Positions 17,701-19,601 of a stretch of 64,000 bases of DNA are shown one piece after another. The DNA lies in contig NC_088859.1 of NCBI RefSeq assembly GCF_963853765.1, positions 46,810,001-46,874,000 of the forward strand, written 5' to 3'. A program made the position numbers and the translations under genes. Source of the DNA: Magallana gigas (lineage: Eukaryota). The notes below the pieces were generated by a model that was not told the DNA's origin, searched no databases, and saw only the letters and a list, made by a program, of their open reading frames with translations. Every line of letters starts with the position of its first letter. Position 1 is the stretch's first letter.

Positions 17701-17959
17701 GCACCAACAGAAATGGGTCCAAATGGAAAAAACATGTCTCAAAGCAGGTACATACCATTATTCAGATAGTCGATCTGCTTGATTTGTTTCACAAATTTTT
17801 CTGCCTTCTGCAATGAATAATTAATCGAAGATAAATATGCATTTCAGTCCTTGTCATACTTGTGATCTTTAATTACAGATTCTTGAGAGGGAAAATAGAA
17901 TGCTTTGGTCCAGTCTACATGGAACTGTACGTGAAAAAAGAAAATATGTAAAGTCTTAA
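14757..17959 (+). CDS. RAG1-core/Transib-like DDE transposase with inserted SAP domain (663 aa, 11 exons)
   Basis: Exons 14757-14846, 15116-15541, 15672-15918, 16003-16114, 16225-16340, 16440-16612, 16719-16860, 16953-17152, 17246-17492, 17590-17747 and 17879-17959 total 1992 nt, all GT-AG and in phase with no stops. Motifs parallel to RAG1: LRFSCDG (D600), GDEN..SL, TCDWK (D708), FCMWC (C727/C730), PIDDLH (H795), YIHAMVYHVPQFL (H937/H942), QVERKN (E962/N965). Exon 1 is the least certain. Confidence 0.85.
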
Positions 17960-19601
17960 ATACCGTCGTTTAGCTACAGTCCCAGTAACCATGTTTCTAC
18001 GAGACCTCGTAAAAGTTACGTGAATCCATGATGGACCACAAACATACAGTATTAGAGGGTCACATAGCTGTGGTCGGTTCTCCTCGGCATCTTTCCAGGT
18101 GCATCTAAACAAAGATTTTTAAAATGAAGCAGATCTTTATTATTATCAAGCAATATTTATTAAGAAGCCCACAAAGATGAACAAATATTGTATTTCTATG
18201 TATAGAAATGTTGTTCTGTTATATTAGAATAATATTGTATCACAATTTTGATATTATTGTTATTGTTTTTACTATTACAATTAAGTAAATAATGTATAAA
18301 ATTGATGTTCCTTATTACAATAATATTGTATCACACATTTGTTATTATTATTGTTTTTAATTAAGTAAATAAACATTCACATTGGATTAAATTTATATAA
18401 TCTTACCTTTTACAATTATTGTGTTGGTATTGCTTTCTCTCCTTATATCCCCACCAGACATGAATAAATTCTTTGAAGGAGACAAATGTTTCTGTTGATG
18501 TTTTGTAACATCTATTTGACCAGTTCTCTCCAATGGCAGAAGTCATTTCTTCACCTGTAAAAATAAACATAAATTACTAAACAATTATATTTAGTAACCG
18601 AACACTTGCATTCCAAGTATGTCTTTCAAGATACCTCCTGTCTCCACTTGCATGGGACCAAAACTTTAAATAGACTTGTCATATGCTCAAGAAAACAATT
18701 ATCATAATATTGCTTCAGATAGTTCATTACCTGTGAGGTAGAAATCCACATTTCCATTGTCTGTTGGCAGAGTATCCTTCAAAGACCTGAAGTATTTATT
18801 AAAACTTGCACAAGAAAAAGGCACTTTCACTGTTGTCCTCGACTGGATACCTAATGCACCATCAGGCGTACGACGTGCATCGCCTAAACTGTCAAAGATG
18901 GCCTGTCGCAGTGCCATAATGTCATCAGGGTTGTTCCTGCGGTCTATTTTGTTGGAATCTAAATTCCTGCGGTGAAGATGACAAGAGAGGGGGTTTCCTT
19001 TATTTCTTTCAATGAATTGCTGCAATTCCTGGTTTCCATCTAAACTGACCCAGGTTGATGGTCCCTCCCAGTCCTTCCATTTTACTAGCACTTCTTGCTC
19101 CCTCCTCTCTAAAATGTCTTCAATCTCCCATAGTTTCTGAGATAAATTGTTGAGAATAGTTTAAAACATGAATGATTATTCTATTATTGTTTTTTTAAAT
19201 TAGTTTGGATAATTCATAATTTTTCCCGATGTAGGATATTCGTGATCTAAGAGTGGCGCTAGATCCGCCTACACACTTTGACTGAGATTTGTATACCTGC
19301 TTCAAATAAATATAAATAATAGAATATAGTTCTAAAATACACATAAAGGTAGATCAAAAGAGAACCCTAACGATATTTAACGATCGCAAACCATAATATA
19401 TACATAGATATGTCTATACATATTATAAACATCAGGGACTTGTACTATGATTATTACAACTATTCTTAGAAAGTATATGCGATATTTGTATAATAATATT
19501 TACCGTACCTCTTTCGACTTGTTCTCCTTTAAACTTCTAAAATTTAAATTTTCCTCCCAATCTCCGAATCTTACAGGGGCTCTTCTCTTTCTCTGTGCCA
19601 T
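17915..19601 (-). CDS. Chromodomain-containing accessory protein of the transposon (~278 aa, 4 exons), function unknown
   Basis: Minus-strand exons 19601-19509, 19136-18731, 18554-18407 and 18104-17915 join in phase with GT-AG junctions. The N-terminus has a basic QRKRR stretch, then the chromodomain WEIEDILERREQEVLVKWKDWEGPSTW. TATAAAT lies ~100 bp upstream (19710-19704). The exact stop is less certain. Confidence 0.78.

Follow-up and report, generated by a model that had tools for sequence, protein, structure and literature searches.

In a 64,000-nucleotide stretch of the oyster Magallana gigas genome (hereafter the window; RefSeq assembly GCF_963853765.1, contig NC_088859.1, positions 46,810,001 to 46,874,000, forward strand) we find a DNA transposon (12840..19755) that carries two convergent genes, one for a transposase and one, on the opposite strand, for a chromodomain protein that we call the partner. 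The partner gene belongs to the transposon, is expressed and under selection, and has stayed with the transposase in bivalves, a gastropod and coral-like contigs; the description of its product as an element-encoded chromatin-reader accessory protein is well supported. The element itself is best explained as a low-copy, recently active, two-gene cut-and-paste DNA transposon.

Most likely, the partner is an accessory subunit of the transposition machinery. Its C-terminal domain would dock on the transposase or on the transposon ends, and its chromodomain would bind a methylated lysine on a histone tail. In this way the transpososome would be held at chromatin that bears the mark, probably repressive and rich in repeats, and the choice of insertion sites would be biased. 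We give this reading, taken as a whole from second gene to biased landing, a probability of roughly 55%.

A transcribed partner gene kept with its transposase

The partner gene occupies the minus strand (17789..19601) and has five coding exons (19601-19509, 19136-18731, 18554-18407, 18104-17964 and 17807-17789; stop codon 17791-17789) encoding 268 amino acids. It was first assembled by eye from splice signals and open frames of the minus strand between 17700 and 19900, and contigs from two public runs were compared with window positions 14100-19755 for splice joints; because these contigs are in spliced form, we take them to derive from RNA. Their minus-strand GT..AG joints (19509/19136, 18731/18554 and 18407/18104) coincide exactly with the three introns predicted from the sequence. 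A fourth intron (17963-17808) is seen in the same contigs, and the coding sequence therefore runs from 19601 to 17789 in five exons and ends in ...VAKRRRQKNL. The splice between exons 2 and 3 is independently validated by two divergent oyster paralogs (L010 and L011), in which this intron is missing and the frame continues straight through. The annotated Crassostrea virginica ortholog, of 269 amino acids, is the same five-exon product with the same C terminus, and the Saccostrea cucullata protein, 84% identical to the window's, also agrees in structure and C terminus. The few stranded raw reads fall on the strands expected for the partner and transposase genes. The partner gene is thus confirmed as real, intact and transcribed. 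A preliminary description of this DNA, made from its letters, had placed an intact spliced gene tail-to-tail with the transposase at 17915-19601; the gene, its convergence with what proves to be a 629-amino-acid transposase gene, its start and three of its introns all stand, but its 3' end was misplaced and it has five exons rather than four.

At their 3' ends the two genes are interleaved, the last coding exon of the transposase lying within the last intron of the partner and vice versa. The run contigs also contain an extra minus-strand splice that joins 17753 to 17378 and is antisense to transposase exons 8-9, and an overlap of the two genes is annotated in Saccostrea too (locus L029, 11885-12095). 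Sense-antisense regulation arising from the interleaved ends (17378-17964) and the antisense splice is possible.

Relatives of the partner are few: only 61 among 1.84 billion representative proteins, all of them short (52-324 amino acids), with those that are named coming from oysters, a mussel and a periwinkle. We searched with both spliced proteins (tblastn) and considered all loci with enough flanking sequence. In every one of them the partner and a homolog of the same transposase lie in convergent orientation. These loci are the oyster paralogs L010 and L011, a degraded copy (L009), Mytilus (L012), Littorina (L013, where the neighbour is an annotated gene of 546 amino acids), two coral-like contigs (L014 and L015), Saccostrea (L029, where the neighbour is a SAP-containing gene of 671 amino acids that overlaps the 3' end of the partner) and two further assemblies (L030 and L031). 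Within the 564-Mb M. gigas genome the main exon of the partner matches six places, three of which are near-identical copies, and each of the six has transposase sequence adjoining. Comparison of the window with Saccostrea, at a dS of about 0.55 for either gene, gives ratios of nonsynonymous to synonymous divergence (dN/dS) of 0.17 over 263 codons of the partner and 0.13 over 625 codons of the transposase. The partner gene is under purifying selection.

These observations bear directly on whether the partner is a captured host gene or passenger with no part in the life cycle of the element. DNA transposons do capture host fragments, and chromodomains are common in hosts, but so small a set of relatives, the same transposase in the same orientation at each locus, the purifying selection, and the lack of any stand-alone copy among the six inspected matches in this genome already disfavour such a reading, which we regard as highly improbable. 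The preliminary description had named stand-alone host genes and inconsistent linkage as grounds for abandoning its proposal; the linkage that we find is consistent throughout.

The same pattern of retention weighs on a regulatory role, in which the partner would restrain transposition, or would compete with the HP1-type readers of the host and so protect the element from silencing by heterochromatin, with the antisense 3' overlap adding control at the level of RNA. The interleaved convergent ends with their minus-strand splice antisense to transposase exons, the very low copy number (only three 5' ends of the element occur in the genome) and the HP1/CBX-like character of the chromodomain would all suit a regulator. 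A pure inhibitor, however, would hardly be expected to stay beside the transposase in bivalves, a gastropod and coral-like contigs, with equally strong selection on both genes, and we consider this role distinctly unlikely.

Two of the linked loci have other neighbours. The L014 and L015 contigs are from a stony coral or a near relative of one, and L014 holds, divergent from the partner, an open reading frame of 433 amino acids (8565-9866, minus strand) from a large uncharacterised family with no Pfam domain; it has 278 database matches, the named ones from Porites, Acropora and Montipora. In L031, positions 1-5083 contain a long terminal repeat (LTR) retrotransposon pol (RVT_1, RNase H and integrase) and a gag-like open reading frame (PNMA/zf-CCHC), about 3 kb upstream of the element terminus at 8172.

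A chromodomain and a family-specific zinc-motif domain

The N-terminal domain of the partner (residues about 32-94; 18948..19136, minus strand) is a real and canonical chromodomain with its three-tryptophan cage intact. We modelled a close ortholog with AlphaFold2, using the family alignment as input, and obtained a mean predicted local distance difference test (pLDDT) score of 83; the modelled fold consists of three strands (36-43, 46-51 and 59-62) and a helix (67-78), with pLDDT above 90. An exhaustive structural comparison of this model (VIA-align) placed chromodomains in all of the first eight positions (Z 5.2-3.9), headed by Oxpecker, cpSRP43, Chp1, Rhino, HP1 and Polycomb (Z 5.2-4.1, root-mean-square deviation 2.3-3.5 Å over 46-59 residues). 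A profile of the N-terminal family compared with PDB sequences likewise matched chromodomains only, with cpSRP43 first (9.4e-9) and CDYL second (2.7e-8), followed by CDY, CBX, MPP8, HP1, Rhino and Polycomb. With the Pfam Chromo model (PF00385; cut-off 25.1 bits), homologs score 24.8, 24.4 and 21.9 bits. By sequence, the closest relatives are CDYL, CBX/HP1, MPP8 and Polycomb-type readers of H3K9me/H3K27me.

The cage residues are W34 (19130-19128) and W51 and W54 (both within 19085-19068). Aromatic residues occupy them in 25/28, 46/47 and 38/42, respectively, of those sequences among the 49 family members that cover the position in question. The chromodomain and the three cage tryptophans that the preliminary description had read from the letters are thus borne out by profile, model and family conservation, and the structure prediction that it had proposed as a check also returns, beyond the chromodomain fold, a confident C-terminal domain with no match among solved structures.

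This second domain is a family-specific alpha/beta domain of about 160 amino acids (residues about 100-255; 17987..18932 on the minus strand, introns included), which folds confidently when modelled alone (pLDDT 87, predicted TM-score 0.78). It contains a putative zinc knuckle, H211-x2-C214-x2-C217-x12-C230 (18056..18423, minus strand), which spans the junction of exons 3 and 4 and in the predicted model sits in the loop of a beta-hairpin joining two long strands. The pattern H-x2-C-x2-C-x11-13-C is present in all full-length homologs that we read, and the histidine and first cysteine are nearly invariant (alignment A4). Comparison with 48,161 representatives of solved chains gave no match for the domain (best Z 3.3), Foldseek against solved structures returned nothing below E=0.04, and a feature search of the ESM Atlas returned nothing usable. 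START/Bet v1/COXG-type folds recurred in weak Foldseek rows and were rejected (probability <=0.2, TM <=0.2; VIA-align Z <=3.3).

In the AlphaFold database the only matches are unnamed proteins, one of them full-length (E=1.7e-18) and several covering the C-terminal domain alone (TM 0.5-0.56). Their accession series presumably point to amphioxus, corals, bivalves and glomeromycete fungi, although the organisms could not be confirmed. The nearest unnamed neighbours of the C-terminal domain and of the transposase exon with the first aspartate are in both cases fungal (Mucoromycota-type) proteins, the organisms on the C-terminal domain side being unconfirmed. This hints at a fungal form of the gene pair that lacks the chromodomain.

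Several points weigh against the partner being a methyl-lysine reader that steers the element. The chromodomain exon of the window, taken alone, scores below the cut-off of the Pfam Chromo model (E=0.12). Cage position 1 or 3 is non-aromatic in some family members. Some chromodomains bind non-methylated peptides, among them cpSRP43, the top sequence match of the chromodomain profile. The C-terminal domain has no relative of known function, so that the role assigned to it is a guess. Finally, of three young copies of the element in this genome (see below), the third lies in low-copy DNA.

Several of the same facts suit a different accessory role, in which the partner would serve end binding or nuclear import, like the Myb-like ORF1 of PIF/Harbinger elements: the zinc-motif domain would recognise subterminal DNA, nuclear entry of the transposase would depend on the basic tails, and the chromodomain, instead of reading histones, would be a protein-protein module. 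The two-gene architecture within inverted termini is consistent with this, and so are the basic clusters at both ends of the partner (an N-terminal tail resembling a nuclear localisation signal and a basic C-terminal tail), the invariant His-Cys3 motif and the preference of cpSRP43, the best profile match, for peptide motifs rather than methyl-lysine. Predicted proteins that match only in the C-terminal domain, with no matched chromodomain, suggest, moreover, that this domain is the older core. Yet the aromatic cage is kept in most members, which would be unexpected if methyl-lysine reading were irrelevant, and fold searches recognised no DNA-binding fold; we consider such a factor unlikely and prefer the chromatin-reading subunit.

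Boundaries, termini and insertion of the element

The limits of the element (12840..19755) were set by comparing three near-identical copies with unrelated flanks. The left terminal inverted repeat is the 13-bp sequence CATGCCAAGAAAT (12840..12852, plus strand), and the right one is its reverse complement (19743..19755, minus strand); the termini read CATGCC. Both genes lie between identical 13-bp termini in all three copies, and likewise in L010 and L030. The same 13-mer terminates the elements in L010, in Mytilus (L012) and in Saccostrea (L029), and near-identical termini are found in L030 (at both ends) and L031. The L010 element (2363-8129) represents a paralogous family that shares these termini, with proteins only about 45-60% identical.

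The element measures about 5.8 kb, and 6.9 kb in the window, where it holds a nested, palindrome-rich insertion of 1.1 kb (12986..14099) that is not its own, being absent from the other two copies (L007 and L008). This insert has 25-30% GC and is dense in inverted repeats and palindromes nested in one another; it resembles a foldback or satellite-like repeat that was inserted secondarily.

Empty sites could be recovered for three independent insertions, those of the window (junctions 12840/19755), L010 (2363/8129) and L007 (2438/8287). In each case the two flanks are contiguous elsewhere in the genome, with 0 intervening bases (at 31 sites for the window, whose flanks lie in a repeat, and at one site each for L010 and L007), and insertion is therefore precise and without target-site duplication. 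The empty sites rule out a 4-bp CATG target duplication. A 59-nt inverted repeat immediately outside the element (12665-12723 / 19756-19814), which we had considered as its termini, was rejected as part of the host repeat element into which it landed; its arms are 97% complementary and the host repeat is present in high copy, with >700 candidate matches.

The transposase genes of the young copies differ by a dS of about 0.025. Two of the three young copies lie within interspersed repeats; with n=3, their locations are only compatible with targeting to repeats or heterochromatin.

The transposase and its probable remote relation to RAG1

The transposase gene (15128..17959, plus strand) has 10 exons (15128-15541, 15672-15918, 16003-16114, 16225-16340, 16440-16612, 16719-16860, 16953-17152, 17246-17492, 17590-17747 and 17879-17959) and encodes 629 amino acids, and all nine of its introns correspond to GT..AG joints in the run contigs. 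Its candidate catalytic residues (D175, D263 and E576), together with C282-x2-C285 and H550-x4-H555, are conserved in most of the homologs that cover them. Between the second aspartate and the glutamate, exon 7 (16953..17152, plus strand) encodes a SAP domain (Pfam E=8e-12, 44.9 bits, cut-off 23.9), which also occurs in the neighbouring genes of L014/L015 (weakly), L029, L030 and L031. We know of no RAG1- or Transib-type enzyme with such an insert.

The same genome provides an internal comparator in its canonical RAGL elements. Two loci, L016 (G000:C2:53472263-53477107) and L017 (C9), contain intact canonical RAG1L genes of 1015 amino acids with a RING domain and the RAG1 core (Pfam E=2e-84), each beside a convergent open reading frame with Kelch and PHD domains, which in L016 (RAG2L-like) lies at 4229-4837. 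Degraded RAG1L pieces are also present (L018-L020). The genome-wide Pfam RAG1 scan that recovers L016 and L017 at E=6e-83 misses the window locus. In Pfam searches of the transposase exons and open reading frames, SAP was the only hit, with neither a RAG1 sub-domain nor a PIF-type transposase domain, and profiles of single exons and exon groups matched no RAG1 or Transib chain among PDB sequences.

Further comparisons point, if weakly, to a distant relationship. A local hidden Markov model (HMM) built from 45 RAG1/RAG1L proteins scores the spliced transposase at 13.5 bits, compared with 9.5 bits for the best of 2000 shuffles, and the homologs that score mostly match in the same two regions of the model, ZnC2 and ZnH2. 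Alignment of the two family alignments (hhalign) gives E=5e-5 (probability 67%) under permissive settings and E=1.3e-3 (probability 18%) under default ones, with E=0.96 for a reversed control; in the permissive alignment the two aspartates, the CxxC, the HxxxxH and the glutamate all coincide. The spacing from aspartate to CxxC (D-x18-C-x2-C) is identical in the transposase and the oyster RAG1L. In a language-model search with the first-aspartate exon, few neighbours have names, and RAG1_RNase_H clusters are among these; the top neighbours are unnamed fungal proteins. On this sequence evidence, the transposase is probably related, though remotely, to the Transib/RAG1 assemblage. It belongs neither to RAGL nor to canonical Transib, because the expected profile match, 5-bp duplication and terminal sequence are all missing.

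In RAGL/ProtoRAG elements the RAG1L and RAG2L genes are convergent, and the RAG2 PHD finger of RAGL/RAG provides a close mechanistic precedent for a reader domain in the partner (PMC7204232). The oyster element resembles them in its DDE enzyme with a putative RAG1-type order of motifs and in a convergent partner, within inverted termini, that carries a domain of histone-reader type. It differs in that its partner is a chromodomain with a zinc-motif domain of no known fold instead of a Kelch propeller with PHD, its transposase has no Pfam RAG1 match, no RING and no N-terminal zinc domains and includes the SAP insert, and its termini begin with CATG (not CAC) and are not flanked by a 5-bp duplication. 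Neither Kelch nor PHD was matched in the window exons or in 10 homologs, where the predicted fold is a chromodomain with an alpha/beta domain and the only zinc motif is the H-x2-C-x2-C-x11-13-C pattern. The preliminary description had the partner in the position that RAG2 holds in ProtoRAG; this is right as to convergence within inverted termini, but the adjoining transposase, which belongs to the same element, is not of ProtoRAG/RAG1L type, its similarity to RAG1 being weak and restricted to the zinc and catalytic motifs. That the partner is a functional analogue of RAG2, as this description proposed, is an inference. The likeness of the partner to RAG2 would be one of logic, a convergent gene giving a DDE enzyme a histone-reader domain, and not of homology: the chromatin reader was recruited here independently of RAG2.

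Other mobile elements share parts of this arrangement, and among them chromoviruses and PIF/Harbinger, with its Myb-like accessory protein, are mechanistically the nearest. In chromoviruses, a chromodomain on the integrase directs integration to heterochromatin. These Ty3/gypsy elements resemble the oyster transposon in supplying their own chromodomain, but there it is fused to the retroviral-type integrase of an LTR retrotransposon, whereas here the chromodomain has a protein of its own, encoded by a cut-and-paste DNA transposon. Transib elements generate 5-bp duplications and have termini resembling the recombination signal sequence heptamer (Kapitonov and Koonin 2015, PMC4411706). With the Transib/Chapaev assemblage the oyster element shares the weak profile similarity at the ZnC2 and ZnH2/DDE motifs, RAG1_RNase_H among its named neighbours, and 13-bp termini; it differs in its 0-bp duplication, CATG ends, second gene and lack of a Chapa zinc finger. 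PIF/Harbinger elements are also two-gene DNA transposons with an accessory protein, and their Spy relatives also insert without target-site duplication (PMC4122938), but the oyster accessory protein is not Myb-like and Pfam finds no PIF-type transposase domain on any exon. Our literature searches turned up no account of a chromodomain gene in a Transib-like element.

We tentatively raise, at less than even odds, the possibility of an undescribed DDE lineage near Transib/RAG1, which would be characterised by CATG termini, insertion without target duplication, a SAP domain in the catalytic region, an obligate partner with a new zinc fold, and a methyl-lysine-reading chromodomain gained in animals.

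Whatever the partner does, the element inserts without a target-site duplication, as few DDE transposons do; its partner contains a C-terminal domain without a known fold; and current Pfam models recognise neither of its proteins, the SAP insert of the transposase excepted. RAG2 links the V(D)J recombinase to H3K4me3 chromatin, and the origin of adaptive immunity still poses the question of how and why a RAG1-type transposase gained a reader partner. If a distant relative has indeed acquired a non-homologous reader partner, the solution would be a recurrent one, and the oyster element, which looks active, would give an invertebrate setting for testing it. If, further, the element represents an undescribed lineage near Transib/RAG1, chromatin-reader subunits would have joined RAG1-like enzymes on at least two independent occasions, the PHD finger of RAG2 being the other case.

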